From NCBI GenBank assembly GCA_036785375.1, contig JAWMAR010000203.1:4154001-4218000 (forward strand): a stretch of DNA of 64,000 nucleotides. The letters are read 5' to 3'. Position numbers and translations under genes: made by a program. The notes beneath the pieces are model-generated. The model saw only the letters and a program-made list of their open reading frames with translations. It ran no database searches and was not told the DNA's origin. Positions 1,316 to 25,725 of the stretch are shown here, piece after piece (the first letter of the stretch is position 1; the number at the start of each line of letters is the position of its first letter). Source of the DNA: Leucoraja ocellata (Eukaryota).

Positions 1316-1576
1316 CCGAGAAAACCACTCGAATCTGTTTTGTCATCCACTCATGCCTCATTGAGCAGATGTACTGATTCTGTTCGTCAAATACTTTCAG
1401 ATCGTGGGTCACGTTGAAATGGCCATTGGGTTCTCTCATGGTTATTTCACTGTGTTTGTTTAAATCGTTCCCCGATTTGTCCTTCCACTCCACCGTTGGG
1501 GCAGGATACCACCCGGACGACTGGCAAGAGAGCATGCCCATTTCGGAATTCCAGATTAATTTGATAGGATCAGCAG
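1316..1576 (-). CDS. IgC-type exon of butyrophilin/B7-family (BTNL-like) gene
   Basis: 261-bp phase 1-1 exon with ttggcag acceptor and GTAAG donor. Encodes ...LSCQSSGWYPAPTVEW...GHFNVTHDL...YICSMRH, the typical BTN/B7 C-domain signature. Confidence 0.9.
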
Positions 1577-2629
1577 CTGCCAAGAAAAGAAACATAAATA
1601 GCAACCATTAATGGCAACATGGTGGCGCAGCGGTAGAGTTGCTGCCTTACAGCGCCACAGACCTGGCTTCCATCCTGACTATGGGTGCTGTCTGTACGGA
1701 GTTTCCCCATTTTCCCCGTGACAGAGTGGGTTTTCTCCAGGTGCCCCCTTGTCCTCCCGTGCCGGACAATTGAGATTGTTTTACCGATACCAATTAACCT
1801 ACCGACCTAGGATAGACATAAAATGCTGGAGTAACTCAGGCAGCATCTCTGTAGAAGGAATGGGTGACGTTTCGGGTTAAGACCTTTCTTCAGACCTGTA
1901 TGTCTTTTGTGTGGGAGGAAGCCGGTGCCCCCACGTGGTCACAGGGAGAACGTACATACTCCCTACAGGCTGTACCCATAGTAAGGATCGAACTCTGGTC
2001 TCTGGAGCAGTAAGACAGCAACTCTACCGCTGTGCCACCATGCCACCATTAATAGTTGTATAATTAGACACCCCAAAGACATCCCTGTTCTTTGTAACTT
2101 TCATGCCATGGACATTCTCAGCTACATTTCCTCCTGACAGAGGCATGAAGTTTATTTGAACTGGTGGAACTTCACAAGAGAATTTTGATGAAGGGAGATG
2201 ACACCAGAATATTCGGCATCTGCTTCCTGTAAAAAAAGCTGTGTTAAGAATTAAAAAGAATCCCAAACACTGAACAATGAAATAAATAAACCCAGGTACA
2301 TTTGACCCTCACTGTAAACAGAATAAGAGAGAAGACAAGGAGGTTTCCAGTAGTGGGTGAGTCTAGAACCCGAGGGCACAACATCAGAATAAAACAGTTC
2401 CTTTAGAAAGGAGAAGAGGAAGAATTTCTACAGCCCGAGGGTGGTGAATCTGTGGAATTCATTGACACTGACAGCTGTGGAGTCCAAGTCATTGGGTATT
2501 TTTAAAATGGAGATTGGCAGGTTCTCGATTAGTACGGGAGTAAGGGGGTATGGGGAGAAGGCAGGAGATGACCGAATGACCAATGGGCCGAATGGCCTAA
2601 TTCTGCTCCTATCAAGTATGAAAACATAC

Positions 2630-2968
2630 CCCAAACAGATAGCCGGACAAGGTCAGCTCCATATCCATCGTCAGTGCTAATACGGACAATGTACTTTCCC
2701 TCATCCCAGATTTCGACATTCTTCAATGTAAGAAATGCTTTTCCTTCTTTAAATGAGGATGTGTCGACTTCAATTCTTCCCGAGTAGTTGGCATGTTGTT
2801 TGCTGACATCGCTTTTATCTCCCTTGTACTCGTACAAGATTCCAGCATCTTGATCCTTCTCCCACCTCACCCTCGGTGCACATGGATTGTCGCACTCAAA
2901 CGTACACTTGAAGGTGACATCCTTGCCGATCTCTACATCTGTGGCTCGTTCACAAGTGATGAATGCAT
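2630..2968 (-). CDS. IgV exon of butyrophilin/B7-family gene
   Basis: 339-bp phase 1-1 exon with ttcag acceptor and GTATG donor. Encodes GKDVTFKC...VRWEK...QHANYSGRIEVDTSSFKEGKAFLTLKNVEIWDEGKY, the BTN/B7 V-set pattern. In frame with the IgC exon. Confidence 0.9.
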
Positions 2969-3946
2969 CTGAACAAAAGGCAGAAAGGGGTTTATTATTG
3001 TCACCTTCACTTGAGTCGAGTTTAGTTCATTGTCACGTGTACCGAGGTACAGTGAAAAGCTATTCGTTGGGTGCTAACCAGTCAGCAGAAAGACAATACA
3101 TGACTACAATTGAGCTGTCCAAAGTGTACAGATGCACGATAAAGGCAACAATGTGCACAAGATAAAGTCCAATCAAAGATAATCTGATGGTCTCTAATGA
3201 GGTAGATAGTAGTTCAGGAATGCTCTCTAGTTATTGGTGGATGGGTCAGTTGTCTAATAATAGCCGGGAAGAAACTGTCCCTGAATCTAGTGGTGTGCGT
3301 TTTCACACTTCTGTACCTCTTGCCTGATGGGAGAGGGGAGCGGGAAGAAGGGGAGTGGCCAGAGTGCAACTTGTCCTTAATTATGCTGCTGGTTTTACCA
3401 ACGCGAGTCAAAGGAATGGAGATCCCGTCCCAAAATGTCACCCATTCCATCTCTCCAGAGATGCTGCCAGTTACTCCAGCATTTTGTGTCTATCAAAGGA
3501 ATGAAGGTTGGTTTGCGTGATGGTCTGGGCTGTGTGTCCACAACTCCCTGCAACTTATTGCTGTATTGAACTGATGCCAAACCAGGCTGTGATGCATCCT
3601 GATACAATGCTTTCTATGGTGTATATGTAGAAGTTGCTGAGAGTTGTTGGGGACATACACAGTGAAAAGCTTTGTTTAGCATGCAGTCCAATCAAATCAG
3701 ATACCACACATAAATACAATCAAGCCAAACACAAACGAAGATAGTGCAGAATAGAGTTCTCAGCATTATAGCGCAATAGTTCCATAGACAAAGGAGTTGA
3801 GGAGTTGAGGAGTCTGAGGGTGGTGAATCTGTGGAATTTATTACCACAGGCAGCTGTGGAGTCTGTTTATTTTAAAGCAGAGATTGCTAGATTCTTGACT
3901 AGTAAGCGTCAGATATGCCATTTCTTGTAGCCTTGGTAGGTATTTA

Positions 3947-6407
3947 CAGTGGCTTGCAAAAGTATTCAGACCCCTTGAACTTTTCCACATTTTGTCACGT
4001 TACAACCACAAACGTAGATGTATTTTATTTGGATTTTATGTGATAGACCAACACAAAGTGGTGCATAATTGTGAAGTGGAAGGAAAATGATACATGGTTT
4101 TCAATTATTTTTTACAAATAAAAAACTGAAAAGTGGGGCGTGTAAAAGTATTCAGCCCCCCTGAGTCAATACTTTGTAGAACCACCTTTCGCTGCAATTA
4201 CAGTTGCAAGTCTTTTGGGGTATGTCTCTACCAGCTTTGCAGATCTAGAGACTGAAATTTCTTTGCAAAATAGCTCAAGCTCAGTCAGATTGGATGGAGA
4301 GCGTCTGTGAACAGCAATTTTCAAGTCTTGCCAGAGATTCTCAATTGGATTTAGGTCTGGACTTTGACTGGGCCATTCTAACACATGAATATGCTTTGAT
4401 CTAAACCATTCCATTGTAGCTCTGGCTGTATGTTTAGGGTCGTTGTCCTGCTGGAAGGTGAACCTCCGCTCCAGTCTCAAGTCTTTTGCAGACTCTAACA
4501 GGTTTTCTTCCAAGATTGCCCTGTATTTGGCTCCATCCATCTTCCCATCCACTCTGACCAGCTTGTCCCTGCTGAAGAAAAGCATCCCCACAGCATGATG
4601 CTGCCACTACCATTTTCACAGTGGGGATGGTGTGTTCAGGGTGATGTGCAGTGTTAGTTCTACACCACACATAGCATTTTGCATTTAGGCCAAAAACTTC
4701 CATTTTGGTCTCATCTGACCAGAGCAGCTTCCTCCACGTTTGCTGTGTCCCCCACATGGCTTGTGGCAAACTGCAAACGGGACTTATTGCTTTTTTTCAA
4801 CAATGGTTTTCTTCTTGCCACTCTTCCATAAAGGCCCAATTTGTGGAGTGCACGACTAATTTTTGTCCTGTGGACAGATTCTCCCACCTGAGCTGTGGAT
4901 ATCTGCAGCTCCTCCAGAGTTACCATGGGCTTCTTGGCTGCTTCTCTGATCAATGCTCTCCTTGCCCGGCCTGTCAGTTTACGTGGACGGCCATGTCTTG
5001 GTAGGTTTGCAGTTGTGCCATACTCTTTCCATTTTCGGATGATGGATTGAACAGTGGTCCGTGAGATGTTCAAAGCTTTGGATATTTTTTTATAACATTA
5101 ACCTGCTTTAAACTTCTCCACAACTTTATCCCTGACCTGTCTGGTGTTCCTTGGGCTTCATGACGTTGTTTGTTCACTAATGTTCTCTAATAAACCTCTG
5201 AGGCCTTCACAGAACAGCTGTATTCCGGTAGGCGGCGCGGCTCTGGTCAGCAGCGGCCTCTGCAGCCTGTCCGTGTTTTATTATTTTTTTGTCTGTGTTT
5301 TTATGTAGTTTTTGTTATTTTATGTTGGGGTGTGTGTGTGGGGGGATGGGGGTGGGGTGGGAGGGGGGGGGGAAACTTTTGAATCTCTCCCTGCACTGGA
5401 GACCCGACCTTTTCTCGTCGGGTCTCAGTTGTCGTTGGGGCCGCAACGAGGAGCAGCCTCCAACGGGAAGAAGCCGGGGACTCTGGTGCCGACTCACCGT
5501 TGCAGTCGCGGAGCTGGCCGAGACCGGAGCGGGTGGAGCGGTGGAGGAGCGCTGCTGCTGCTGCTGCCACCGCCACTGCTGCTGCTGATGCGAAGGCTGC
5601 TACTGCGGGTCTGCGGACGGCGGCACCGGGAGCCCGCGGATCCCTGGAGGGAGACCGCTTTTCGGGGCTCCTGCAACGGCGAATTCTCCCGCCCGTGTTG
5701 CGGGGTTGAAGAGCTCCAGGAGCGGGGCCTGACACCACTGCCCCGCGCGGCTGGAATGGCCGCGGGACTTTGCGAGCGCACACCGGGGGCTCCAACACCA
5801 AGACCCGGTGTGCGACCTCGCACCACCCGGCGTGGCTTTAATGGCCGCGGTACAATCGCCATCGCCAGCCGGGGGCTTTGACTTTGACTATGACATCGGG
5901 GGGGGGAGAGTGCAGTGGAGAGATAAGTTTTTTTGGCCTTCCATCACAGCTATGTGATGGATGTTTATGTAAAATGTAATTATGTTGTGTCTGGGGTCTA
6001 TTTGTGTGTAATGTATGGCTGCAGAAACGGCATTTTGTTTGGACCTCCAGGGGTCCAAATGACAATTAAATTGACTCTTGACTCTTGTATTTATGCTGAG
6101 ATTAGATTACACACAAGTGGACTCTATTTACTAATTAGGTGACTTCTGAAGGCAATTGGTTCCTCTGGATTTTATTTAGGGGTATCAGAGTAAAGGGGGC
6201 TAAATACTTTTGCACGCCACATTTTTCAATTTTTTATTTGTAAAAAAATTTGAAAACCATGTATCATTTTCCTTCCACTTCACAATTATGCGCCGCTTTG
6301 TGTTGGTCTATCACATACAATCCCAATAAAATATATTTACGTTTGTGGTTGTAACGTGACAAAATGTGGAAAAGTTCAAGGGGTATGAATACTTTTGCAA
6401 GCCACTG
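3947..6407 (-). mobile_element. Tc1-like DNA transposon (IR/DR type), frameshifted transposase, interrupted by a retroposon
   Basis: TA|CAGTGGCTTGCAAAAGTATTCA...TGCAAGCCACTG|TA with ~215-bp TIRs. Transposase fragments at 5161-4166: GRPRK, WSDETK, FQQDNDPKH, WPSQSPDLNPIENLW. Confidence 0.95.
5225..6085 (+). mobile_element. GC-rich non-autonomous retroposon with a CTG repeat and Rex1-like microsatellite tail
   Basis: TGTATT TSD inside the Tc1 and a (gactctt)n tail. Homologous copies at 34447-34905(+) and ~59670-60600(-). Confidence 0.8.
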
Positions 6408-6544
6408 TATATGTTATTGTCGTTGGTTTACTATTACACTGTACTGAGGTAGGAAAAATATATCATTTTATGTGCTAGCCAGACAGATCATATCATTCAC
6501 AAGTACAACAGGTTGTGCTAAAGACAAATGAAAATTACAGTGTG

Positions 6545-7650
6545 TAGGAAGGAACTGCAGATGAACTACACCAAAGGTAGACACAAAATGCTGGAGTAAC
6601 TCAGTGGGACAGGCAGCATCTCTGGAGAGAAGGAATGGGTGAAGTTTCAGGTTGGGACCCTTATTCAGACTGAGTGTCAGGAGAGAGGGAAACAGAGATG
6701 TGGAAGGGTAAGGTGTGAAAACAAGAAATCAAAAGGGGAGTTGTCAAGGAAAATATAGAATGAATCATTGTTAGCACCAATGCATCCGACCAGTAAAATG
6801 TAAACAGGAGGAAACTAATCGAACTAGCATGTGGGAGAGATGGAGAGAGGAGAAAAGCAAGGATTACTTGAAGTTACAGAAGTCAATATAAATACATCTA
6901 GGTTATAAACTGCCCAAGCAACATGTGAGGTGCTGGGCCTCGCACTGACAGTGCAGGAGGCCCAGGACAGAAAGGTCAGTGTGGGAATGGGAGGTGGAGT
7001 TAAATTATTTAGCAACTGAGGCAGACTGAGTGGAGGTGTTGAACGAAATAATCGGCGAGTGTGCGCTTAGTCTCGCCGATATACAGGAGTCCATACATGG
7101 AACAGTGGATACAGTAGATGAGGTTGGAGGAGGTGCAAGTGAACCTCTGCCTCACCTGAAAGGACTGTCGGGGACCTTGGACAGAGTCGAGGGAGGAGGT
7201 ATCGGGACAGGTGTTGCATTTCCATCCGTTGCAGGGGCAAGTACCTGGGGAGGGGGTGGTTTGGGTGGGAAAGGACGAGTTGACCAGGGAGTTGTGGAGA
7301 GAATGGTCTCCATGGAAAGGGGTGGAGATGGGAAGATGTGGATCGTAGTGGAATCCTGTTGGAGGGGGCGAAAATGTCAGAGGATTATGTGCTGTATGCG
7401 ACAGTCCTTTCAGGTGAGGCAGAGGTTCACTTTATAGTATACCTTCCCCTCAGTAACAATGTTCCATTCTACATTTTTCTTGACCTTCATCCCCCTTGAT
7501 CTATCGTTTTACACCTAACCCTCCCATATCTCTATGTCCCCGTCTCCCCTGACTCAGTCTGAAGAAGCATCTCAACCCAAAATATCACCCATTCTTTCCA
7601 TCCAGAGATGCTGCCTGTCCCGTTGAGTTACTCCAGCATTTTGTCTATCA
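6545..7650 (-). mobile_element. Penelope-like element fragment (GIY-YIG endonuclease region)
   Basis: Minus strand encodes TCTSSNLIYCIHCSMYGLLYIGETKRTL. Flanked by the short 'atgctggagtaactcag...gcagcatctctgga' terminal repeat in opposite orientations. Confidence 0.75.
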
Positions 7651-9749
7651 TCAAAGATTTATAGTGTGATAGAGCAAGTGTAGATTCATGTTTACGGGCC
7701 TGTTAGGCTGCAGCAAATATGTCTTTCATTGTTCTGTTGTCAGTACATTTGAGAAATAACACTCTTGTATCTCTCCTTAGATGGTGTATGTCAATAAGAC
7801 GAGAGATCTGGTTATTATTGCTCCTTACTCTGTGCACATTATGTTTTAAATGTTAATTGCTTTGCGAGTGTTGAATACAAGTGATTTGGGAAAAGATATC
7901 TTGCTTGTTGCATCCCACCATTTTATTTTGCTGTTTATTGTGATGAAGTTTAAGGTGCTAGGTTTATTATTGTCATGGCTACTGAGGTACAGTGAAAAGC
8001 TTTGTTTCACAACTATCCAAACAATTCAGATAATACTCTACATAAATAAATCAAGTATTCAGGTAGTGAAGTGGAAGATACAGAGTGCAGAATATAGTTC
8101 TCATTCTTGTAGCGCACCAGTTCCAGAGACAAAGTCCAATGTCCACAGTGGGGTAGAGATGAATCAAACAGTAACCTAGCTTATGGAAGAATGCTTTGAA
8201 AAGCCTGATGACAGAGGGGAAGAAGCTGTTCCTGAGCCTGGTGGTGCCCACTTTCAAGCTTCTATACCTTCTGCCAGATGGGAGCAAGGAGAAGAGGAAT
8301 TACAGGGTTGGGACGTCTTTGATTATATTGCTTCTTTTTTGAATGCCTGGTTTGGGCTTTTCAACACAGGCTTTGGAAAACTGTGGTCATTCTCCGTTAC
8401 ATTGTCTGTTTGGCAGAAATAGAAGACACATGGAACTGTAACTGCTGGAATCTTACGTTGAACAGAAAGTATTTGAGTAACTCAGAGGGTCATGCAGCAT
8501 CTCTGGAGGACATGGATGTACGATATTTCAGATCAGGACCCTTCAGAAATAGATCATCTCCAGGGTCTTCAGTGTTATAATACTCGACAAGGTTATATTC
8601 AAGGCAGAATTGAATTAATTGTAAGATACAGCATGGAAACAGGCCCTTCAGCCCACCGTGTCCACGCCGACCATCGATCACCCGTTCACACTAGTTCAAT
8701 GTTATCTCACTTTTGTATCCACTCCCTACACACGACAGGCAATTTACAAAGTTCAATTAACTTACAAACCCACGTCTTTGTGTGTGGAAGGAAACAGGAA
8801 CACCTGGAGGAAACCCACACGGTCACAAGGGGAACATGCAAACTCCACACAGACACCACTCGAGGTCAGGAATGAACCCGGATCTCTGGCACTGTGAGGC
8901 AGTGGCTTTACCAGCTGTACCAACCAATGTGCTCAATTGATGGAGTGACGTTTGACCATATCTGTGAATAGGCCAAGGCAGAATATCAGTGGATAATTCG
9001 AAAATATGATCATTCATTTTGCCAGTGGTCACAGTAGTGGCAAAATTCAGTCAAGTAGAGACCAATAAAGTTGTTATGTCCCAAAGGTCCTTTTACAGAC
9101 TGGTTATCCTAATCACTGTTGGGATGAATAAAACTGTTTCGAGAAACAGAACCGCAGATGTTGGTTTAAATAAAAACACTGATGAGTTTCAGGTATGATT
9201 TGTATAATATTTTAAATATGTTATATAATATGTTCCGTGAGTTGGGTCACAAACCTGAACGAAAAAGCTCCTCGGCCCACAACTTAGCTGAGAGGAAAAG
9301 ATAGATCAGCCATGATTAAATGGCAGAATAGACTCGATGGGCCGGATGGCCTAGTTCTTCCCCAACGACGTATATGAACTTATGACTGGTTGGGATCATG
9401 TAAATCCCTTGAGAAATTAAATCCCTTGAGTAGATGTAGGAGAAAAGAGGGAAATCCCAAGGGCAAAAAAGAGGTTAAGTACTGCTTTGGCAAATAATGT
9501 AAAAGATCCTCTGAAGATATTCTTAGTGTATATTAAGGGCCTAAGAGTAACTAGGGAGAAAATAGGGCTCATTATAGATCAACAAGGTCATCCATGTTGG
9601 AGCCACATGAGATAAGCAAGATGTTAAACCAAGAGGCAGCTGTCAAAGGTGTTTAATTGTTAGATGTACTGCATGGAACAACAGAACAATTAAATGCTTA
9701 CTTGCTGGCAGCTTACCAGGTCTATAAATGCAACAGCACATCAATAACA

Positions 9750-11860
9750 TAGAACATAGAAAAATAGTTGCAGGAGTAGGCCATTCTGCCCTTTGAGCCA
9801 GACCGCATTCAATACGATCATGGCTGATCATCTAAAATCAGTACCCCGTTCCTGCTTTTTCCCCATATACCTTAATTCCTACAGCCCACAAGAACTAAAT
9901 CTAACTCTCTCTTGAAAACATCCAATGAATTGGCCTCCACTGCCTTCTGTGACAGAAAATTCCAGATTCACAACTCTCTGGGTGAAAAGGTGCTTCCTCA
10001 TCTCACTCCCAACCCCTTAAACCGTGACCTCTGGCTCTGGACTCCCCCAACATCGGGAACATTTTTTCCTGCATCTAGCATGTCCAATCCTTTAAGAATG
10101 TTATAGTTTCTATTAGATACCCTCTCATCCTTCTAAATACAAAAATAGTATTTCTAAATACAAGCCCAGTTGACCCATTCTTTCATCATATGTCAGTCCC
10201 GCCATCCTGGGAATTAACCTGGTGAACCCACGCTGCACTCCCACAATAGCAAGAAAGTCCTTCCTCAAATTAGGAGACCAAAATTGCACACAATACTCCA
10301 GGTGCAGTCTATCCAGGGCCCTGTACTACTGCCATAGGAACCCCTTGCTCCCAAACTCAAATCCTCTTGCAATGAAGGCCAACATGTCATTAGCTTACTT
10401 CACTGCCTGCTGTACCTGCATGCTTACTTTCAGTGGCTGATGTACAAGCACGCCCAGGTCTTGTTGCACCTCCCCTGTTCCTAATCTGACATCATTCAGA
10501 TAATAATCTGCCTTCCTGATCTTGCCACCACAGTGGATAGCATCACATCTATCCACATTGTACTGCATCTGCCATGCATCTGCCCACTAACCCAACCTAT
10601 CCAAGTCACCCTGCAGTCTCATAGCATCCTCCTCACAGCTCACTGCCACCCAGCTTTGTGTCATCCGCAATATAATCAAACAAGCAATAAATTAATAACC
10701 ATAATACTAGCTAACCACCATAGAGCAAGATAAAACAGTCCCTATTGCAACCAAAGACACAGTCCAGAGAACATTTTTGCTGAGGTTAGTGTTGTGTAGT
10801 GTTCAAGAGCCTGATGGTTGCTGGGAAGAAGCTATTCTTGAACCTGGAGGTCACAGTTTACACCCTCATGTACCTTCTTCCTGATAATAGAGGTGAAATG
10901 AGAGGATGGCCAGTGTGCTGCAGGTCTTTCATGAAGAAACTTGATTTGGATGAGTAAAAGGCAAGATTAGCACGTTTGCTGATGATACAAAAGTGAGTGG
11001 TTTTGCAGATAATTGTGAAAGATTGCAACAAGGTGGTGGGCAGAGGAATGGTTGATGGAATTTAATACAGTGAAGTGTGAGGTGTTGCATTTTGGGACGA
11101 CGAACAAGGGCAGGACCTACTCAGTAAGTGGTAGGCCACTGGGTAGTGTTGTAGAGCAGAGGGCTCTAGTACAGGTGCATGGTTCCTTGAAGGTCGAGTC
11201 ACAGGCAGATAAGGTGGTCAAAAAGGCACTTTGGCCTTTATCAGTCAGAGTATTGAGTATGGAAGTTAGGAGGTCATGTTGCAGTTGTACAATACGTTGG
11301 TGAGACCGCATTTAGAATATTGTGTTCAGTCTGGGCACCATGTTATAGGAAAGATATTGTCAAGCTTGAAAGGGTTCAGAAAAGATTTACGAGGATGTTG
11401 TCAGGACTAGAGGCTGTGAGCTATAGGGAAAGGTTGAATAGGCTGGGTCTCTATTCCATGGAGCATAGGAGGATGAGGAGAGATCTTATAGAGTTATACA
11501 AAATCATGGGAGGAATAGATCAGGTAGATGAACAGAGCCTTTTACCCAGAGTAGGGGAATCAAGGACCAGAGGTCATAGGTTCAAGGTGGAGGGGAAAAT
11601 ATCTGAGCGGTAACTAGGAATCCGATGGGTAAATCTTTCACACAGAGAGTGGTGGGTTTATGGAACAAGCTGACAGAGGAGATCGGTGAGGCTGGGACTA
11701 TCCCATCGTCTAAGAAATGGTTAGACAGGTACATGGATAGGACAGGTTTGGGAAGGTATGGACCAAGCGCAGGCAAGTGGGACTAGAGTAGCTGGGACAT
11801 TGTTGGCCATTGTGGGCAAGTTGAGCCGAAGAGCCTGTTTCCACACTATATCAATCTATG
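9750..11860. mobile_element. Two degenerate CR1 LINE 3' fragments (~9750-10670 minus; ~10940-11860 plus)
   Basis: [18 protein letters not shown]-like and RTRGH motifs; (atagaaac) tail. Confidence 0.8.
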
Positions 11861-13308
11861 ACACTAAACAAGGAACCGCAGATGCTGGTTTACATAAAGG
11901 GACACAAAGTGCTAGTGTAAATCAGTGGTTCAAGCAGCATCTCTGCAGAAAAGGAATCAGTGCCGTTTTGGATCCAAAGAAGGGTCTCAACCTGAAACAT
12001 CACCTATTCCTGCTCTCCATAGATGCTGTCTGACCCGCTGAGTTACTCCAGCATCTTTGGTGTAAATGAGCATCTAAAGTTCCTTCCAATACAGCATGTA
12101 TATGTATGTTGACTAACTCCAGCATCTTAGATCTCCCCAAATAGTAGCCCAGATGTAGGGTGTAAGTTGCAGCAGGAGGTAAAACTGGCATGTAACAAAG
12201 GTAATGCCACTATGGTGATGTGGGATTTCAATATGCAGGTAGACTGGGAAAATCAGCTTGGTTCAGGACCCCAAGAAAGAGTTTGTAGAGTGCCTCCAAG
12301 ATGAATTCTTAGAGCAGCTTGTAATGGAGCCGACCAGAGAAAAGGCAATTCTGGATTTAGTGTTGTCCAATGAACCAAATTTGATAAGAGAACTCGAGGT
12401 AAAGGGACCGTTTGGAGGTAATGATCATAATATGATTAGTTTTAATCTGCAATTTGAGAAGGAGAAAGTTCAATCGGAAGTGTCAGTGATGCAGCTGAAC
12501 AAGGGGGACTATGAAGGCATGAGTGAGGAGCTGGCTAAGGTAGACTGGAAAGGGATACTAGCAAGAATGACGGTGGAACAGCAATGGCAGGAATTTCTGG
12601 GCATAATCATGAAGACGCAGGATAATTTCAGTCTAAAAAAGAAGAAAGATTCTAAGGGGAGTAGGAGGCAACCATGGCTGACAAGAGACGTTAGGGATAG
12701 AATAAAACTGAAAGAAAAGATGTATAATACAGCAAAGAGTAGCCGCAAGCCAGAGGATTGGGAAACTTCCATAGGACACCAGAAGGAAACAAAACGGGCA
12801 ATACGGGCTAAAAAGATGAAGTATGAAGGGAAGCTTGCCAGGAATATAAAGAACAGTAAAAGCTTATTCAGATATGTTAAGGGAAAAAGAGAAGCAAAGT
12901 CAAATGTGGGTCCCTTGAAGGCAGACACGGGTAAAATTATTCTGGGGACCAAAGAAATGGCAGAAGAGTTGAACAGGAACTATGGATCGGTCTTCACTAA
13001 GGAAGACACAAACAATCTCCCAGAAGTACTGGATAACAGAGGATCTAAAGGGGTTGAGGAACTGAAAGAAATCTCAATGGGATTAGGTTAGGTAAGGGGG
13101 AGGTACAGCAAGACCTGGGTGTCCTTGTACATCGGTCACTGAAAATTGGAGTGCAGGTACAACAGGCAGTGAAGTAAGCTAATGGAATGTTGGCCTTCAT
13201 AACAAGAGGATTTCAGTATAGGAGTAGAGAGGTTCTTCTGCATAGAAACATAGAAAATAGGTGCAGGAGTAAGCCATTCGGCCCTTCGAGCCTGCACCGC
13301 CATTCAAT

Positions 13309-13515
13309 ATCAATCAATCAACCTTTATTGTCATCTTGCAAGCAACAAGTACAGTGCAAAATGAAAAGACGTTTCCCAGTGAATAGCGGAGCCTCGCACA
13401 TGAAATTTAAAACACTTCTCACATAATAACACTAAAAAACAATCCAGTCCCTGATGGAACAGAATAAATAGTTAAAATCAGGTAAAAAACACAATGTTAA
13501 AAACAGTAAACCAAT

Positions 13516-13551
<36 letters not shown>

Positions 13552-16500: not shown

Positions 16501-16695
16501 AGCGGCGTATTTGGTCTAAATCGCACCAAAACGCGCCTTTACTACTCCCGCGGTTTGCCCCGATGTTTAGGAGCATGTTCCTGCAGTACATATATCTTGG
16601 ACAGACAGGACAAGACACACAACACTCACTTTTAAAAGCTCCGACTATCTCCCGAGGGGCCGCTGCGACTGTGCGCGCCGCCATCTTGGATACTC
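13309..16695 (-). mobile_element. Full-length Rex1/Babar-type LINE
   Basis: 5' CAAGATGGCGGC start, a single long ORF, 3' AATAAA and (TTGA)n tail. Confidence 0.9.
13619..16684 (-). CDS. Intact 1021-aa APE endonuclease + reverse transcriptase (Rex1 clade)
   Basis: [21 protein letters not shown] (APE); [34 protein letters not shown] (RT); [10 protein letters not shown]-terminus. No stops. Confidence 0.95.
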
Positions 16696-16993
16696 ATTCA
16701 TCCAACTCAGTATCCTGTACCTGCCTTCTCTCCATACCCCCTGATCCCTTTAGCCACAAGGCCCAAATCCAACTCCCTCTTAAATATAGCCAATGAACTG
16801 GCCTCAACTACCTTCTGTGGCAGAGAATTCCAGAGATTCACCTCTCTCAGTGTGAAAAATGTTTTCCTCATCTCAGCCCTAAAAGATTTCCCCCTTATCC
16901 TTAAACTGTGACCCCTTGTTCTGGACTTCCCCAACATCAGGAACAATCTTCCTGCATCTAGCCTGTCCAACCTCTTAAGAATTTTGTAAGTTT

Positions 16994-18370
16994 TGAGGAA
17001 ATATTATATAAATAGAACCCCGTGGATAGTGACTTTTATATAAGCTAGGTAATTTGCAAAAGAAAAACAAGGTTTTCCTGAACTGAAATAAAGTGCAAAC
17101 AGACAGATACACACAGGCAAAGATGAATCAAAACATGGAGGCCTGAACCTGAACCTGCTTAGCTTAGGTTTAGAAACATAGAAATTAGGTGCAGGAGTAG
17201 GCCATTCGGCCCTTCGAGCCTGCACCGCCATTCAATATGATCATGGCTGATCATCCAACTCAGTATCCCGTACCTGCCTTCTCTCCATACCCCCTGATCC
17301 CCTTAGCCACAAGGGCCACATCTAACTCCCTCTTAAATATAGCCAATGAACTGGCCTCAACTACCCTCAGCTAAGGCACTGGAGGAAATTGTATTTGATA
17401 TGACTTTATGTTGAAGAATAGATAACTGCAAAGGGGCCTCTTCTTAGGCCAGAGGTCAGTTGTTCTTTCCTTTGTGGACATTCTTGAACTGTGAGGTTTG
17501 AGCAGAGTGTGAGATAATAGGCCCTGTAGTTAGCCTTGGTTATGTTGAATTAGGATGGATGCGAGGGGAGTAGTTGTAAAAGACCTTGTAGAGAGATTAG
17601 AAATACAGCTTCCAGAGACAGCATGAAAAGGGGAGGCTGTAAATTAAGCTGTATGAAGTATGTAAGATAAGTGAATGAAGCTGTATCCTGGAACCAAACA
17701 CTAATTAATTAAATTGACAGATTTATGACCCATGTATGCTTGATTGGGATGTGAAGGATTTTGAACTTAGAAACTGTAATTCAGCAAACTTATAATTAAT
17801 GTTTTAAAGACATAGGTAAAAGTATTTAAAACTGTGAAATTAAAGTGAAACAATTTATGAAATGTATTGTCTTAGTTTGAATGTAAACATTACTTATAGA
17901 AATTGTTTAGATTTATAGAAATATCTTTCTTCTTGGTATGGGAAGTGTGTATGACTTGTGTGATCATTGTGTTATATACGTATCTTGTATTTTGAGGAGT
18001 GATCTTTCATAAGAGCCTACTGGGTTTTGCTGTGTTGAAATAAAATAATTCTAAAACAAAGTTATACCACAGGCAAACAAAGGCTGTAATGAGACCAGGG
18101 AAGGGGGATCATGTGAGTGATGTTGTAAATCACCAGAAGGACTCAGATGATTGGTTACTAGCTTGTCATACCCTCTGTATCTGAAATGACTAATACCTAT
18201 ATAAATGCCATGAGTTTGTATCAAAGTAACTCCTCTCTGGACCCGCCCCAGAGCATCAGCTCTGTGTTGGAAGGTTCAAGAGACTAGTCTCAGCTGAACA
18301 AAGAATTGATTTTAACAGCAACAAGTGTTTGAGTCAAGTTGACTTTAGATTGACAGAACTCAGTTTAACA
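16994..18370 (+). mobile_element. Solo LTR (probably ERV) containing a CR1-tail SINE at ~17171-17368
   Basis: GTTT|TGAGG...TTAACA|GTTT. Removing it restores the host CR1 sequence aagtttctataagatcc. TATA box (TATATAAA) at ~18198. Confidence 0.75.
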
Positions 18371-19445
18371 GTTTCTATAAGATCCCCCTCAATCTTCTAA
18401 ATTCTAGCGAATACAAACCGAGTCTATCCAGTCTTTCTTCATATGAAAGTCCTGACATCCCAGGAATCAGTCTGGTGAACCTTCTCTGTACTCCATCTAC
18501 GGCAAGAATGTCTTTCCTCACATTAGGAGACCAAAACTGTACGCAATACTCCAGGTGTGCTCTCACCAAGACCCTGTACAACTGTAGTAGAACCTCCCTG
18601 CTCTTATACTCAAATCCTTTTGCTATGAATGCAAACATACCATTTGCTTTCTTCACTGGCTGCTACACCTGCATGCCTGCAGTTGTATAGGGCTCTGGTA
18701 AGACCACATCTGGAGTATTGCGTACAGTTTTGGTCTCCTAATTTGAGGAAGGACATCCTTGTGATTGAGGCAGTGCAGCGTAAGTGCACAAGATTGATCT
18801 ATAGGATGGTGGGACTGTCATACGAGGAAAGATTGAAAAGACTGGGCTTGTATTCACTGGAGTTTAGAAGAATGAGGTGGGATCTTATAGAAACGTATAA
18901 AAGAACTGGACAAGCTAGATGTAGGAAAAATGTTCCTAATGTTGGGCGAGTCCAGAACCAGGGGCCACAGTCTTAGAATAAAGGGGAGGCCATTTAAGAC
19001 TGAGGTGGAGAAAAAACCTTTTCACCCAGAGAGTTGTGAATTTGTGGAATTCCCTGCCACAGAGGCCAGTGGAGGCCAAATCACTGGATGGATTTAAGAG
19101 TTAGATAGAGCTCTAGGGGCTAGTGGAATCAAGGGGAGAAGGCAGGCACGGGTTATTGATTGAGGACGATCAACCATGATTGCAATGAATGGCGGTGATG
19201 GCTCGAAGGGCCGAATGGCCTCCTCCTGCACCTATTTTCTATGTTTCTGTCCCTTGCTGTGTCTGTCTTTCGCTCTCTCCTTCCCTCCCTCTCTCGCTGT
19301 CTCTCTGTCTTTCACTGGAGGAACTCAGCGGGTCAGGCAGCATCTCTGGAGAGAAGGAATAGGTGACATTTTGGGTCGAAACCCTTCTTCGGACCCTCCA
19401 TTGATCCAGCCTGACCTGCTGAGTTCATGAACACTTTGCTCTTAA

Positions 19446-21640
19446 AATAAATTTGTGGTCCACTGAAGAAACAACACGATAGACCACTCTGGAAGTGCCA
19501 GTTTTGCTGTACACTTTATACTGTAGAACATATCATAATATACCCCGAGTGATTTAATGGGGTTAGTTTTTTTTAATCTGTTGTCTAGAATTAATCGGGT
19601 ACCCACCCTATGTACCTTTTATCAGATTTAAATCGGAATTACGATTTTTTTTTGTTTTCCTTAAGCACAAAAATAGTGAAGCTCATATCAGATGCCAAAA
19701 AATCAATGAAACAGCTGAAATAGCAATAAAGCAATAGAAATGTAGTGTATATGTCACTGAAAAAGGACAAAGCAAAAACAGGTTGAATTTTTAGAACTGT
19801 ATATAATATTGTACACAAAGTAGGCCATACACAGATATGTCTTCTGATATTGAACTGCAAGAAAGAAATGGCATCGACTTAGGGTACGTTCTACACTCTC
19901 GTAAGTCATGTGCAGATGTTTCTCACCACATAGGGAACCAGGGCTCGAAATTAGCGGTGGCCCGGTTGCTAATGGCAACCTACAGTGCCGCTGGGCAACC
20001 TGAAAGTCATGCCATTTTGCCCGGCTTGGCAAGCACCCGGGACTGTAGACAATGCTGGAGAAAATCAGCGGTGAGGCAGCATCTATGGAGCGAAGGAATA
20101 GGCGACGTTTCGGGTCGAGACCCTTCTTCAGACTGATGTCGGGAGGGGGAAGGGTGGTCGGGAAAAAGAAAGGAAGAGGCGGAGACAGTAGGCTGGTAAT
20201 GGGAGGGGAAGGAAGGAGAAAGCAAGGACTACCTTTGAAATTGGAGAAGCCAATGTTCATATCGGTGGGGTGTAAACTACCCAAGCAAAATACGAGGCGT
20301 TGTTCCTCCAAATTGCGGTGGACCTCACTCTGGCCATTGAGGAGGCCCATGATAGAAAGGTCGGATTCAGAATTGGAGGGGGAGTAGAAGTGCTGAGCCA
20401 CCGGGAGATCAGGTTGGTTAATGCGAACTGAGGAGTTGTGTGAAGCGATCGCCAAGCCTGCGCTTGGTCTCACCGAGGTTGATCATACGCTGAATAATCC
20501 AACCGAATTTTGTTTGGAAGTGGAAAGAAATAATAGAAATTGCATTAATTGCAACATGTAAAAAGAGATGAGATACTGTATTGTAATTTTGCTGCATGTC
20601 ATTGTGGTATGTCTTGATTGGTGAATATGTTTAGTTTGTGACTTTATTTGAAGCAGAAATAATCGCATTATCGCACGTGTCATCTAAGCCGTCTTAAATG
20701 ACCACCTAAACTATCATTTGGCAACCTACAAAGCTGCTTAGGTTGCCCGGCTGGCAACAGGGGAAAAAAGTTAAGCGAGAGCCCTGGGAACTAGATGCGA
20801 AAGAGTAGCGGAAAATATAATTTCAAAACAATCTAAAATGTCTATTATGATTGATGAATCTACTACTATTAATGGGAAAACTGTTCTAGTAGTCTGCTTG
20901 AGAGCAGCAGTTGGTGAATCTTCCCAACCTATATCATTCTATTTTGACTTAGAACATATGTAACTTGGTGAAGAAGGGTTTCGGCCCGAAACATTGCCTA
21001 TTTCCTTTGCTCCATAGATGCTGCTGCACCCGCTGAGTTTCTCCAGTATTTTTGTGTACCTGAAACTTGGTGCAAATTCAAAATCTATATATATATGATG
21101 GGCTTCTAAGGTGCTTACAAGCAGGCGGTTTTTTCAATACAGTACCTAAAAGAAAATGAGATATCACATGTAACTGATGGTGCATCAGTAATGTTAGGAT
21201 GAAATGCAGGGGTTGCAAAACTATTTCTTGAGGACTTCCCTAATGCAACTGTTTGACACTGTGCCAGTCACAGGCTTGAACTCAGTGTAGGTGATGCTAG
21301 AAGTGAAGTTGCTGGTTTGAATCATTTTCAGATATTTTGTGATAAATTGTATTCCTTATATCATAGGTCTCCTAAGAATCAGGATGAGTTAACTGCATGC
21401 GCTGAGGCTCTTCACTGTCAACTGTTGAAAATTGGTTGTGTTTTCAATGTGAGATGGGTTGCTTTGTCTTAAGGAATTGTAAAGGCAATGTGGCCGTCTT
21501 ATAAAGCTGGGAGCATTTTGGAAAAGCAAGCTGTGATGCTTCAAGATTTAGTGCAGAGAGAGCAAAGTACGAGGGGCTGAAAAAAAAATTAGAATCATCA
21601 GCTTTCGTAAATAATTTGGGCTCGTTGATGGTGCAATAAA
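19446..21640 (+). pseudogene. Decayed hAT (ZNF862/Charlie-like) transposase remnant
   Basis: SIMIDESTT, VTDGASVMLG and HCASHRLELSV motifs with stops and insertions. Confidence 0.75.
19939..20786. mobile_element. MITE with CAGGGCTC TIRs and 5-bp TSD (GGAAC), itself holding a Penelope fragment (~20045-20480); partial second copy ~23800-23955
   Basis: GGAAC|CAGGGCTCG...GAGAGCCCTG|GGAAC. Removing it restores the host hAT reading frame. Confidence 0.8.
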
Positions 21641-22058
21641 CTATATTGTACAATAAACTATATTATAAACACACAATAAACAAGTTATGCATTTTGTACT
21701 CTTACATGGGTATAACCGCCTATAAAAAAATGTCCCCCCTCCTTCCCAACCTCAGCCTCACGGACCTCAGAGTACCCCTAGTTCCTAAAACCCATTTCCC
21801 TCACTGGAAACCACACACCTCCATATTCAGTGATAGTTTCTTCCCAGCTGTTATCAAGCAACTGAACCACCCTACCAACAACTGGAGAGCGGTCCTGAGC
21901 AACTATCAAGCAATTCAAAAGAGAGTTAGATAGAGCTCTTGAGGCTAACGGAATCAAGGGGTAATGGGGAGAAGGCAGGAACGGGTTGCTGATTGTGGAT
22001 GATCAGCCATGATCACATTGAATGGCAGTGCTGGCTCGAAGGACCGAATGGTCTTTAC

Positions 22059-22810
22059 CAGGCACGGAAATCGCTATCAAAATATGGAGGAGACTGGGGG
22101 ATACCATTTTTAGCGGCTGCGTACGCATGCACTCGCTCACACACACACGCGAGGCTTCGGAGGCTCAATCCAGCGCTAAATGCAGCTCAACTCTGCCTGT
22201 CTCGCCGGGTTAACCTACAGCCCTGCCTGGACTGACGGGTCACCAGCGCTGCTTCTCCGCGCTGGCCATATTTCCCGCAAGCCCAGGCAGGTTAACCTGG
22301 CGGAACAGGCAGAGTTGAGCTGGGTTTAGCGGTGCTTCTCTGCACTGGCTGTGGGCCTGGGGGTACAGCTCGCATCGGACTCCTGACCTCTCTGGCCACC
22401 CATGGGGGGTGGGGGGGGGGGGGGGGGGGGGGGAGGGGGGCACTCGGGTGGGGACGGGAGAGCGCGGGAGACCTGGCCGGGATCTATCCTGGCTGCGGAT
22501 GAGGCGCCGGTCTGTGCCACGTCTCCCTCTTCCAATTACCGTGCACTATCCTCAGTCCCACCCACGCCTTCCTCCTCCAATGATCGCGCTGAATCATCAA
22601 GTCCCGCCCCATTGCCTGCTGCCCGAAGTCCCTCTTGTCCAATCAGCGCCCTCGATCAGCAGTCCGACCCCCACTGTCTCACAGAAAGCAGATTTCACCG
22701 GGTTTTAAAATCCGGATTACAAAAAAATGGGGGGGGGGGGGGGGGGGGGGGGGAGGGATGTTCACCACCTCTCAAAACAGAGGGGACACACCCCTGGTTT
22801 TCCGCCCCTG
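22059..22810. mobile_element. hAT-type MITE
   Basis: CAGGCACGGAAA...TTTTCCGCCCCTG termini with imperfect 8-bp TSD GTCTTTAC/CCCTTTAC; internal poly-G tracts. Confidence 0.65.
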
Positions 22811-23671
22811 CCCTTTACCATGTATCTACACACTGTAAATGGCTCAATTGTAATCATGTATTGTCTTTCCGCTGACTGGTCAGCAAGCAACAAAAGCTTT
22901 TCACTTTACATGACAACAAACTGAACTAAGGTTAAGTAACATAGACTTCCTTCAAGATATCAGTAGTAACATCTGCAAGAACCCCCTGCATTCAGGACTT
23001 TCTCCAAGGGAAATACAGAGGAAATGTCACAGCAACTATCCTAGCAAAGCCAGACTGACGTCACTTTACCTGCTGCACCACAGAGGTACATTCAATCAGG
23101 TTTTCAATCTTTAGTTTTAGAGATACAGCACGGAAACGGACTGTTTGGCCCACCGAGTCCTCGCTGACCAGTGATCCCCGCACACTAGCGGACAATTTAC
23201 AATCCTACACACACACGCACGGGACAACTTACAATTTTACCAAGCAAATTAGCCAACAAAGCTGTACGTCTTTAGAGTGTGAGAGGAAACCAGACCACAG
23301 AGAAAACGCACACGGAAATGGGGAGAATGTACAAACTCCTTATAGACAGCACCCATAGTGAGGTTCAAACCTCTCTCCTACATTCTGACATTGTTACCCA
23401 TTATTCATCCAACAATGGTGGTGTCACAGGTACATGGATAGGATGGAGGGATATGGGCCAAATGCAGGCAGATGGTACAAGTGTAGATGGAACATGTTGG
23501 TCAGCAGAGGCAAGTTGGGCCAGAGGGCCTTTTTCTACACAGTATGGCTCTAATAAATGTGAATGGAAACATTGTAATGCGAGCTTACTCATAATAACTC
23601 TCGCCTCATCAACGGTGAAGAACACCAAGACTCAAGCACCTGCAACCACCCACACCCAGAAAGGAACTTAC

Positions 23672-23717
23672 CAGCAGAAGCGAACAGGATGGAAAACACC
23701 AGATGTTTGAAGTACAT
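23672..23717 (-). CDS. Signal-peptide (leader) exon of the BTNL-like gene (exon 23721-23672, ATG at 23717)
   Basis: ctatttcag acceptor, AATAATG start, MYFKHLVFSILFASA, then a phase-1 GTAAGT donor. Spliced to the IgV exon it gives MYFKHLVFSILFASADA|FITCE, with an A-x-A cleavage motif. Confidence 0.75.
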
Positions 23718-24850
23718 TATTCTGAAATAGAAGTAACAACTGGTTAGAATGGAGGAGAGCAAGTATTTAAAGTCAACCTGAATGATCACAAAAGCTTAAA
23801 AAGAGTTCATTTCCCTAGACACTTTGTCCGAGCACATTATCGCACACTCATGCAAGCCGTCTTAAATGACTACCTAAACTGTCATTTGGCAACCTAAAAA
23901 GCTGCCTAGGTTGCCCGGCTGGCATTAGAGAAAAAAAAGTTAAGTGAGAGCCATGCTGTTGGTCAAGACAACTACTCATAAATATCAAAGATAGACACAA
24001 AGTGCTGGAGTAACTCAGCTTCTGTTGAGAAAAGGAGTACGTGGCATTTCGGGTCGAAAGCATTCTTCAGCAGTTCTGACTTCCCTACCATCGTGGGGAT
24101 CTATCGCAGTCGCTGCCTCAAGAAGGCTGGCAGCATCATCAAGGACCCACACCATCCGGGCCACACACTCATCTCCCTGCTACCTTCAGGTAGAAGGTAC
24201 AGGAGCCTGAAGACTGCAACATCCAGGTTCAGAAACAGCTTTTTCACCACAACCATCAGGCTATTGAACTCAACTCAAACAAAACTTTGAACATTAATAG
24301 CCCATTATCTGTTTTATTTATTCATGCATGTATATATTTATATAATGGTATATGGACACACTGATCTGTTCTGTATTCCTGCCTTCTATATTCTGTTGTG
24401 CAAAGCAAGAATTTCATTTTCCTATCTGGGAATAACAATAAACTCTCTTGAAACATGAATAATTCCTTCCACCACCTAAAACAAAGGTTTAAAAACTCTT
24501 ACAAAAGATAAATAATGCTTGATGCAACTCAGCAATAAATGGAAACAAAGGCAATTAAATTTCTGGTGGTAGTGGGGTCTTCAACATGAAATTTTGGCCC
24601 CGTGTTATCTCCCCACCCATGCTGCCCGACCTACTGAGTTTCCAACATTTTCTGCTGATATTTTAGGTTTCCAGCATCCACGGTGTTTATTTAGGCCTAA
24701 TATCCCTCAACGCCTTGCCTATACTTCATTCTATGCTACAATGATCAAATAAACTCAGTAGACAGACATGCAATATTAACATAACAGATATAACAAATAT
24801 ATATTTACAACTGGAATTATAATTACAAAACATTGATACGGAATACGTAC

Positions 24851-24930
24851 ATTTATGAAAAGTCAGCCCCAGCATCAACAAATCTGCTCTAAACCTTTCA
24901 CTCTGGCTGTACGTTGAGATGAGGAAGTTA
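24851..24930 (-). other. Putative non-coding first exon of the BTNL-like gene (5' boundary approximate)
   Basis: GTACGT donor at 24850-24845 lies ~105 bp downstream of the Y box in unique sequence. The leader exon has its own acceptor, so an upstream exon is needed. Confidence 0.5.
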
Positions 24931-24955
24931 AAATTGATACATAATCAGGTCCGGC

Positions 24956-25020
24956 CCAATCCGATGCCAGATTGCCGGCTACGTCACTAGTTGCGAGGCA
25001 GAGGAGAGATCGACAGGTTG
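24956..25020 (-). promoter_or_regulatory. MHC-type S-X1-X2-Y module (RFX / CREB-ATF / NF-Y)
   Basis: Minus strand reads CAACCT -16 bp- CCTCGCAACTAG TGACGTA -19 bp- ATTGG. Order, orientation and spacing match MHC SXY modules. Confidence 0.75.
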
Positions 25021-25043
25021 CAAAACGTTCTCCTCCTGCTGCA

Positions 25044-25152
25044 GATTGCGCCTGCGCGCAGTTGGCATCGCGCCGGCGTTTACCAATACCGCTACTGCGC
25101 CTGCGCTCACCCGGCACCAGGGTGCGCTCACCCACCACTGCGCCTGCGGTGC
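25044..25152. promoter_or_regulatory. CpG-rich promoter segment with three NRF1-like TGCGCCTGCG motifs
   Basis: tgcgcctgcgcgca, tgcgcctgcgct and tgcgcctgcggt within ~110 bp of CpG-rich unique sequence. Confidence 0.55.
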
Positions 25153-25659
25153 CGGCACTCCCCCTCCCCTTCACAACCTTCAATCCAATCCAGCCTTTGT
25201 GGACCGTCCCGTCCAGTCCACAGGGAACCTCCTTCTGTCGCAGTGTTTATATCATTTTAATAACATTTTTCATTTGTAAAATATTTATGTTGATGTTATA
25301 CTTTTTAGATTATTCGTTTATTAAATTTTGAGTTGATTGGCCAGAATAATCAAAACAGTATACTGAGGGATACATATTGATAAATGTTGCTTTATTTTTA
25401 ATACACTAATGTCTACAAGATAAGCACTGACCAGTTCCAATTGCACTGCACTCTGCATGAAACGTATCCGGTTTTGGTGCAGTCAATGCGTATCTGAAAC
25501 TTAAAACACAATGACTTGAATATTCAAATATGTGAGGCTGGTAAGTTAGTGGAATTTATCAAAAAGTTTGTCATGAATCACATGCATTAATGTCAATGTC
25601 TCAGTTGATTTTCGGTGTTGCAATGGGTTAGGTTACAGTGACTGTCTGGCCAAAGTCGT

Positions 25660-25725
25660 GAAATGGAAACAGAAAGTCAGAAACGAAACTTAGTGGTGTT
25701 TCCCCACAAACGAAACTTAGGAATT
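25660..25725. promoter_or_regulatory. ISRE/IRF-site cluster with a near-kB site
   Basis: GAAACGAAACT (25680-25690), CAAACGAAACT (25707-25717), GAAATGGAAACAGAAA, and GGTGTTTCCCC between them. Confidence 0.5.

Follow-up and report, generated by a model that had tools for sequence, protein, structure and literature searches.

The question raised by this locus of the skate Leucoraja ocellata is whether a set of SXY-like boxes, which lies upstream of a B7-family gene on the same strand and in the same orientation, acts as the promoter of that gene. Work on mammals has elucidated SXY modules and the transactivators that act on them. The window, that is, the whole stretch of DNA analysed, comprises 64,000 nucleotides (contig JAWMAR010000203.1), and its features are collected in Table 1. 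A first-pass annotation had proposed that the gene is driven by an SXY promoter of the MHC type through a non-coding first exon. The element emerges as a well-formed candidate next to a B7-family gene that is itself confirmed, and the RNA test spoke against its use as the proposed promoter.

Table 1. Features of the candidate module, its surrounding island and the B7-family gene (window positions).
Feature	Position	Strand	Details
S-box-like hexamer CAACCT	25015..25020	-	sequence; with the preceding G, GCAACCT, a second GCAAC half-site
X1-like box CCTCGCAACTAG	24987..24998	-	RFX half-site GCAAC
X2-like box TGACGTA	24980..24986	-	CRE half-site, abuts X1
Y box ATTGG	24956..24960	-	19 nt past X2
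Non-coding exon 1 of the first-pass annotation	24851..24940	-	donor GT at 24850; unsupported, depth 0, no joint listed
Leader exon	23672..23721	-	ATG 23717, reads MYFKHLVFSILFASA, phase 1 end, acceptor cag, donor GTAAGT
Intron	2969..23671	-	20.7 kb, filled with transposable elements
IgV exon	2630..2968	-	339 nt, phase 1 to 1, Pfam V-set 3.1e-9
IgC exon	1316..1576	-	261 nt, phase 1 to 1, Pfam C2-set_3 (BTN3A2-like IgC) 3.3e-15
Small CpG island	24900..25200	.	GC 0.55-0.63, CpG o/e 0.91-1.15
Three direct copies of TGCGCCTGCG(C/G)	25047..25148	.	spaced 49 and 43 bp apart
Two extra ATTGG boxes	25083-25087, 25185-25189	-	sequence
IRF/ISRE-like GAAA repeat cluster	25657..25722	+	GAAATGGAAA, GAAACAGAAAGT, GAAACGAAACT, AAACGAAACT

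The gene has the B7/butyrophilin layout of signal peptide, IgV and IgC, with each Ig domain on its own phase-1 exon. Its structure was largely read correctly at first pass: the IgV and IgC exons are phase-compatible (all phase 1) and Pfam-supported, the leader exon is covered by RNA-like contigs in 3 of the 3 contig runs and agrees with the orthologue leaders in length and in its junction with IgV, and the intron of about 20 kb described as filled with transposable elements holds a LINE ORF at 13619-16684 and Tc1/mariner pieces at 4166-5073. Alignment to orthologues places the last exon of the gene beyond the window.

By sequence, the skate gene is assigned as orthologous to a VTCN1-like IgV-IgC protein, about 240 aa long, that is conserved in elasmobranchs; its closest proteins are B7/BTN members, and Pfam, PDB and orthologue matches agree with the earlier identification of a B7/butyrophilin-family gene of a cartilaginous fish. 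Structures of human VTCN1 (B7-H4; 4gos, 4.6e-11) for IgV, and of BTNL8/BTN2A1 for IgC (BTNL8 22kk_C, 1e-11), are the best PDB matches of the skate domains, the matches to VTCN1 and BTNL8 being weak (bit scores 46-48); the sub-family within B7/BTN is not settled. Shark and ray orthologues of 237-244 aa are named VTCN1 or VTCN1-like, 'V-set domain-containing T-cell activation inhibitor 1(-like)', by the NCBI pipeline. The skate IgV and IgC are colinear with Narcine bancroftii P0162 (59% and 58% identity), and share 47% and 50% identity with Heterodontus francisci XP_067896839.1 and 39% and 47% with Callorhinchus XP_042190234.1 ('butyrophilin-like 2 / CD276-like'). The F-strand cysteine, kept by Narcine and sharks, is absent from the skate IgV. 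Protein searches with the IgV exon returned one candidate and none that was scored, and the representative set gave no self-match, with a best single-domain identity of 49%; the skate protein is therefore absent from those collections. B7-H6 (NCR3LG1), the NKp30 ligand, was rejected as an identity, no B7-H6 chain being found among the best 60 PDB rows when the horn-shark orthologue and both skate Ig exons were used as queries.

The orthologue product consists of signal peptide, IgV, IgC and a short conserved tail. No transmembrane segment was found in any of 11 orthologues of 236-244 aa (19-residue windows after residue 30, maximum Kyte-Doolittle mean 1.32; orthologues only), and their precomputed Pfam lists contain Ig families only, with no B30.2. 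The two marks of a butyrophilin proper, i.e., a transmembrane segment and usually B30.2 (PRY/SPRY), are thus missing in the orthologues, to which this comparison is confined, the skate 3' end being outside the window. Because the orthologues have neither, the skate gene is probably not a butyrophilin proper.

Upstream of the leader exon, the minus strand reads CAACCT-N16-CCTCGCAACTAG-TGACGTA-N19-ATTGG from 25020 to 24956, exactly where the first-pass annotation had placed the S-X1-X2-Y string (read directly from the sequence, coordinates rechecked). The four boxes follow each other in the order S, X1, X2, Y on one strand, and GTTGC at 25017 on the plus strand is the GCAAC of the S box read on the other strand. 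The sequence of the S box sets whether a module answers to NLRC5 or to CIITA. The S hexamer CAACCT presumably resembles the MHC class I type; a literature text search for it returned one unrelated primer only. S and X are separated by 16 bp, and X2 and Y by 19 bp (21 bp when the count starts from TGACG). According to excerpts of published work, X is preceded by S at a distance of about 15-16 bp and followed by Y at about 20-22 bp (Ludigs 2015, PMC4374748; Dang 2020, PMC7753138). The order and the S-X gap of about 16 bp noted at first pass therefore match the spacing that excerpts of Ludigs et al. (2015, PMC4374748) report for NLRC5 targets, and the X-Y distance of 19 bp comes near 20-22 bp, a comparison that is approximate since boundary definitions of published motifs may differ.

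Chance origin of this composite is unlikely. In the window there is a single occurrence of the exact X1-X2 19-mer class, and the relaxed X1-X2-Y composite was observed once against 0 to 0.01 expected per window (300 Markov simulations). For S, X and Y together, 3.5e-4 (strict) or 0.011 (core) occurrences are expected analytically over 355 windows of the genome, counts that are optimistic because the motif definitions are post hoc. Within the window, only the X1-like box matches CCYNGCAACNNNTGMSGYM without a mismatch; with up to 2 mismatches, 7 matches were found versus 1.81 expected, and those with 2 mismatches at 5687, 34490 and 60059 are part of a GC-rich repeat that lacks a CRE.

The motif lies within an island of about 300 bp, some 1.2 kb upstream of the leader exon, whose flanks have CpG o/e mostly of 0-0.6. 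Present function may nevertheless be lacking, the boxes being a chance match met in reading many windows, the relic of a decayed promoter or that of a low-copy mobile element. This account agrees with the post hoc definition of the motif and with the fact that no transcription is seen; it is considered unlikely, as the chance count stays far below 1 even over 355 windows, CpG o/e of about 1 has been kept inside a region at 0-0.6, no second copy of motif or island occurs within the 64-kb window, and the island is without cover while neighbouring repeats reach a depth of thousands in the same RNA runs.

The RNA data comprise three contig (RNA-like assembly) runs and one raw-read run, X24. In all three contig runs, RNA-like contigs cover exactly 23672-23721, with depths of about 4.5, 9.7 and 20, and the depth ratio of 1.78, shared by the 3 runs, corresponds to 32:18 positions and so to the leader exon exactly. 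Since contig cover ends exactly at 23721, some upstream exon exists. That exon was not found at the motif: depth is 0 over the bins of 24815-25016, i.e., over motif and proposed exon 1, in 4 of 4 runs (X1, X5, X7, X24), and the three contig runs that contain the leader exon have depth 0 in 13 of 13 bins of 24512-25824. X24 has some depth (0.22-4) in 4 of these 13 bins, all outside 24815-25016. No joint 24851>23721 is among the joints listed for the RNA runs. An SXY module typically lies directly before the start site of the gene that it regulates; this position is not seen for the skate element, neither RNA cover nor a joint being present at 24815-25016. An induced first exon, or a very short one, could escape this RNA test.

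These data bear most directly on the promoter proposed at first pass, in which transcription would start about 30-100 bp past the Y box and an exon 1 ending at 24851 would be spliced to 23721, in dependence on CIITA or NLRC5. Order, spacing and orientation of the module fit such a promoter, as do the strong acceptor of the leader, the need for an upstream exon and the precedent of mammalian BTN genes described in excerpts of PMC7753138; moreover, an exon 1 of less than about 20 letters in a contig would escape placement. The donor that had been claimed at 24850 exists insofar as a GT follows AAT there, a match in the letters that no read or contig uses; AAT/GTACGT is a moderate match only, and GT sites are frequent. 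Zero depth in every run at motif and exon 1, and a joint that is unlisted although three runs hold the leader at appreciable depth, speak against this model, so that the claim that the gene is 'driven by' the SXY promoter is not borne out, and the model as a whole is regarded as very improbable.

Besides the SXY-like boxes, the island holds the TGCGCCTGCG(C/G) copies, which are assumed to be NRF1-like, and three co-oriented CCAAT boxes, Y box counted. Multiple GCGCCTGCG repeats together with CCAAT boxes are typical of generic CpG-island promoters. The island may serve as a generic promoter or regulatory element of a different transcript, for instance a divergent ncRNA on the plus strand or a gene outside the window, with its SXY likeness unrelated to CIITA or NLRC5. 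Three GCGCCTGCG repeats and the three CCAAT boxes suit this explanation, and the plus-strand CCAAT at 25185 sits 30-80 bp before the sole nearby reads, about two fragments of X24 at 25118-25420 whose first mates are all on the minus strand and which show 2 differences from the window. A promoter of the housekeeping type should, however, give clear RNA, and the three contig runs show none and X24 only these fragments; the direct contact of X2 with X1 and the distances from S to X and from X to Y are left unexplained as well.

A plus-strand host gene served by the island was also sought and none was found: the plus strand of 25200-64000 has 80 ORFs with a length of 70 aa or more, and these showed no host-gene domain and only transposon domains. 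Matches of 78 of the 80 were limited to RVT_1 (2), ALKBH8_N (1), THAP (1) and Exo_endo_phos_2 (1), and the remaining two encode a transposase and a retrotransposon pol, in a scan that would miss short exons. No Rfam match occurs in 23300-26300 at E up to 1. With no host-gene domain found on the plus strand up to 64000, the generic explanation is held to be possible and rather improbable.

In class I promoters, an ISRE lies adjacent to SXY. The skate IRF/ISRE-like cluster is located 640-700 bp upstream of the S box and holds 2 of the 10 GAAANNGAAA matches and 3 of the 18 AANNGAAAC matches of the window.

The reading tentatively preferred is that the motif is a real transcription-factor platform, acting most likely on the B7 gene, without being the promoter from which the sampled RNA arose. 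It is favoured because the composite is improbable by chance and CpG has been kept in a CpG-depleted region. Strand and orientation shared with the gene, the failure to find another host-gene domain, the IRF/ISRE-like cluster farther upstream, the S-X and X-Y distances and the SXY modules of mammalian BTN2A2 and BTN3A genes also count in its favour. The candidate platform would consist of the RFX half-site of the island, the abutting CRE half-site, the NF-Y box and the upstream S-like hexamer, whose order, orientation and spacing are those of the mammalian SXY enhanceosome module and which face the gene. For the B7 gene, such a platform might be a proximal enhancer or else an alternative promoter that is inducible or restricted to certain cell types, and the leader exon would then join, at its 5' side, an upstream exon elsewhere than the proposed exon 1. 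Counting against the platform are the facts that the RNA neither begins at the module nor runs across it, that the GCGCCTGCG repeats and CCAAT boxes of the island suit a generic promoter, that the ISRE-like cluster is 650 bp off and that the motif was defined post hoc. Recruitment of CIITA or NLRC5 would be a further step, and the full proposal, in which an SXY enhanceosome responsive to CIITA or NLRC5 would turn on a secreted VTCN1-like B7 protein in skate cells that present antigen or are stimulated by interferon, is judged quite unlikely.

No paper on an SXY module at a cartilaginous-fish B7/butyrophilin gene was found in the literature search. In mammals, as far as excerpts of the sources go, BTN2A2 (human, mouse) is a CIITA target and human BTN3A1-3 are NLRC5 targets, all with SXY modules upstream (PMC7753138; PMC11257985), which is the background that the first-pass annotation had given (PMC7753138). 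If the skate element works, its 65 bp offer a test of whether co-signalling ligands were linked to MHC genes through RFX/CREB/NF-Y and CIITA/NLRC5 about 450 million years ago.

A mammalian SXY module is bound by RFX5/RFXAP/RFXANK, CREB/ATF and NF-Y and transactivated by CIITA or NLRC5. Mammalian BTN modules lie in proximal promoters, and ChIP and reporters have shown that they work, whereas the skate module, situated in a CpG-rich promoter-like island, lies 1235 bp upstream of the nearest confirmed exon, with no transcription start seen beside it and with an IRF-like cluster 650 bp upstream in place of an adjacent ISRE; with regard to factor binding and transactivator response, it is a candidate. 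In BTN3A the Y box is reversed (CCAAT) and follows X by 13 bp; that of the skate is the canonical ATTGG. The skate module and the mammalian SXY enhanceosome have in common the order S, X1, X2, Y on one strand, an X2 that abuts X1, and ATTGG as the Y box.

An SXY-like motif set (CAACCT-N16-X1-TGACGTA-N19-ATTGG) lies on the minus strand upstream of a GT that had been read as a splice donor. The string described in the first-pass annotation is present, and its coordinates were confirmed by further analyses. The window has a single GCAAC-N3-TGACG composite, where 0.047 would be expected, and a single one that also includes ATTGG at loose spacing, where 0 to 0.01 would be expected (300 first-order Markov simulations). 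An analytic first-order calculation, in which Y could take 11 spacings and an S-like pentamer 5, gave expectations of 3.5e-4 (strict X box) and 0.011 (core X box) over 355 windows of this genome, and of 0.04 and 1.3, respectively, for an assumed 2.5-Gb genome; as the motif patterns were fixed after the site had been seen, the true odds are less extreme than those computed. Chance alone is a poor explanation of the module, and as a regulatory candidate the element is both credible and non-random.

Features of the skate locus, with positions in the window
Feature	Position	Strand	Details
S-box-like CAACCT	25020-25015	minus	seen in sequence; 16 nt to next element
X1-like CCTCGCAACTAG	24998-24987	minus	seen in sequence
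X2-like TGACGTA	24986-24980	minus	seen in sequence; 19 nt before ATTGG
Y box ATTGG	24960-24956	minus	seen in sequence
GT	24850	minus	downstream of module
Two further ATTGG boxes	25083, 25185		in island; orientation as module's Y box
Three direct copies of GCGCCTGCG (TGCGCCTGCG(C/G))	25047-25148		in island; 49 and 43 bp apart
NF-kB-like decamer, one	25223		listed with island contents
IRF/ISRE-like GAAA repeat cluster (GAAATGGAAA, GAAACAGAAAGT, GAAACGAAACT, AAACGAAACT)	25657-25722	plus	
Leader exon	23721-23672	minus	pyrimidine-rich acceptor ending cag; ATG at 23717; GTAAGT donor
IgV exon	2968-2630	minus	phase 1 to 1; good splice sites; Pfam V-set 3.1e-9
IgC exon	1576-1316	minus	phase 1 to 1; good splice sites; Pfam C2-set_3 3.3e-15
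LINE reverse transcriptase ORF	13619-16684	minus	1021 aa; long, uninterrupted
PIF/Harbinger-type DDE_Tnp_4 transposase ORF	28587-29927	plus	446 aa; long, uninterrupted
LTR-retrotransposon pol ORF	47906-50734	plus	942 aa; RT, RNase H and integrase domains; long, uninterrupted
GC-rich repeat family, three copies	5300-5900, 34400-34900, 59800-60400		ORF-like stretches in common

The module sits in a small CpG island of 300 bp (GC 0.55-0.63, CpG o/e 0.91-1.15; flanks mostly 0-0.6). Apart from a 51-bp repeat edge, blastn found no second copy of 24500-25850 in the window. A repeated TGCGCTCACCC unit lies between the three TGCGCCTGCG(C/G) copies of the island, whose GCGCCTGCG motif is presumably NRF1-like. 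The IRF/ISRE-like cluster lies in single-copy sequence, 640-700 bp upstream of the S box; it holds two of the 10 matches to GAAANNGAAA in the window and could act as an interferon-response element within the module's regulatory region.

The gene model is well supported from the leader exon onward. The leader encodes MYFKHLVFSILFASA and ends in phase 1; the leader, IgV and IgC exons are phase-compatible as had been claimed, with the Ig domains recognized by Pfam and the leader covered in RNA-like contigs. C2-set_3 is the butyrophilin 3A2-like IgC family, and tblastn with both Ig exons as queries found no additional Ig exon in the window. The intervening transposon-filled intron, put earlier at about 20 kb, was recovered at 20.7 kb and contains a LINE ORF (RVT_1, 4.7e-35) and Tc1/mariner pieces (DDE_3, HTH_Tnp_Tc3_2).

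Three uninterrupted transposable-element ORFs suggest that elements have recently been active around the locus. The copies of the GC-rich repeat share a CCCCGCAAC..GGGCGGGA motif, the source of 2-mismatch 'X-box' matches, which were rejected as SXY modules.

A HMMER search with the IgV exon as query, run against 1.84 billion representatives, returned 557 matches at E <=0.001. The best single-domain matches were P0021 (XP_067896839.1; 49% identity, 241 aa), annotated VTCN1 in Heterodontus francisci, and P0074 (43%, 268 aa), corresponding to Callorhinchus milii proteins annotated CD276-like or butyrophilin-like 2. P0021 as query matched 10 proteins at E <=1e-10 among 45 candidates, all of 237-244 aa; nine bear VTCN1 or VTCN1-like names (in the horn shark, seven other sharks and the electric ray Narcine bancroftii) and one is an unnamed protein from a Logan contig. 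Identities of the IgV and IgC exons are 59 and 58% to Narcine, 47 and 50% to Heterodontus, and 39 and 47% to Callorhinchus. The skate leader has 15 residues ending ..ASA, with D-A-F across the splice, and the Narcine leader 16 ending ..SSI, then D-A-F. The nearest PDB matches are human VTCN1 for the IgV exon (4gos, 4.6e-11) and BTNL8 for the IgC exon (1e-11); B7-H6 identity was rejected, no B7-H6 chain being among the best 60 PDB matches listed. The label 'butyrophilin/B7-like in a cartilaginous fish' is upheld by Pfam, PDB and elasmobranch orthologue matches.

The orthologues (P0021, P0151 and P0154-P0162, the last from Narcine) have 236-244 aa, and in 11 of 11 the signal peptide is the only strongly hydrophobic 19-residue window. 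Since no transmembrane-grade segment follows it, the VTCN1-like family appears to be a secreted protein of B7 type, with IgV and IgC domains, that is conserved in lineages from chimaera to rays; it is not a butyrophilin proper. Most orthologues share a C-terminal tail, ..F-T/S-D-G..D-D-G..D-L, with final residues D-L or E-L; the corresponding skate exon is absent from the window. At the F strand the skate IgV has Y-I-V, Narcine and sharks have Y-x-C, and Callorhinchus likewise is without this cysteine. Skate and Narcine have extra cysteines in common, in an F-E/D-C-x3-C stretch after the B strand of IgV.

Promoter use was assessed in three RNA-like contig assemblies from three studies (runs X1, X5 and X7, labelled 'RNA?'), picked by their share of IgV-exon words (0.73, 0.58 and 0.55), and in X24, an oligo-dT RNA run of raw reads that carries the same species label; all were mapped onto 23300-26300. 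Among single-copy sequence, the assemblies had depth only in bins 23603-23703 and 23704-23804 (X1, 3.08 and 1.73; X5, 1.42 and 0.80; X7, 6.41 and 3.61). The ratio is 1.78 in each, or 32:18 positions, which places the cover on 23672-23721 exactly. The assemblies therefore behave as RNA and the leader exon is used; as cover ends at its acceptor, an upstream exon should exist. A non-coding exon 1 at 24940-24851, spliced to 23721, had been proposed for this place. Depth was zero in X1, X5 and X7 in all 13 bins of 24512-25824, which include the module and that exon, and no 23721-to-24851 joint was among the joints listed. An uncovered stretch is no proof of absence in such mapping, and it would miss a first exon of which a contig holds less than about 20 letters. 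X24 gave no reads over the leader exon and about two fragments near the island (25118-25420). In these the first mates all map to the minus strand, and every fragment differs from the window at two sites (C>T at 25264, T>A at 25302). The fragments may come from a weak plus-strand transcript that runs divergently from the island, or from another allele or copy.

The RNA result speaks against the exon-1 model as far as these samples go and does not show the element to be inert; transcription driven by SXY may be confined to cells or stimuli outside them. The statement that the module drives the gene is mildly contradicted by these data, and its role as this gene's promoter, hence an ancient co-regulation, is unproven. 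A functional platform with some kind of action on this gene is a possible reading of the element, held with some doubt; putative co-regulation of the CIITA or NLRC5 type is unlikely, and the promoter model exactly as proposed is more improbable still.

Publications on elasmobranchs place NKp30/NCR3 and UrIg in the MHC, UrIg within its class III region (PMC10751288, PMC12227049), and butyrophilin genes of three cartilaginous fishes on the MHC class I chromosome (PMC12841164); a candidate MHC linkage of the skate locus is plausible. The literature searched contained no account of a cartilaginous fish B7/BTN gene with an SXY module. In mammals, published work confirms the regulation cited earlier: BTN2A2 is a CIITA target, and BTN3A1-3, whose module is atypical, are targets of NLRC5 (Dang et al., 2020, PMC7753138; 2024 review, PMC11257985). 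In NLRC5 targets, S is reported at 16 bp and Y at 20-22 bp from the X box, a spacing that is critical, with NLRC5 specificity set by the S box (Ludigs et al., 2015, PMC4374748). Compared with the mammalian module so described, the skate module lacks closeness to a demonstrated transcription start, but it follows the same rules of order and spacing and has the canonical ATTGG.
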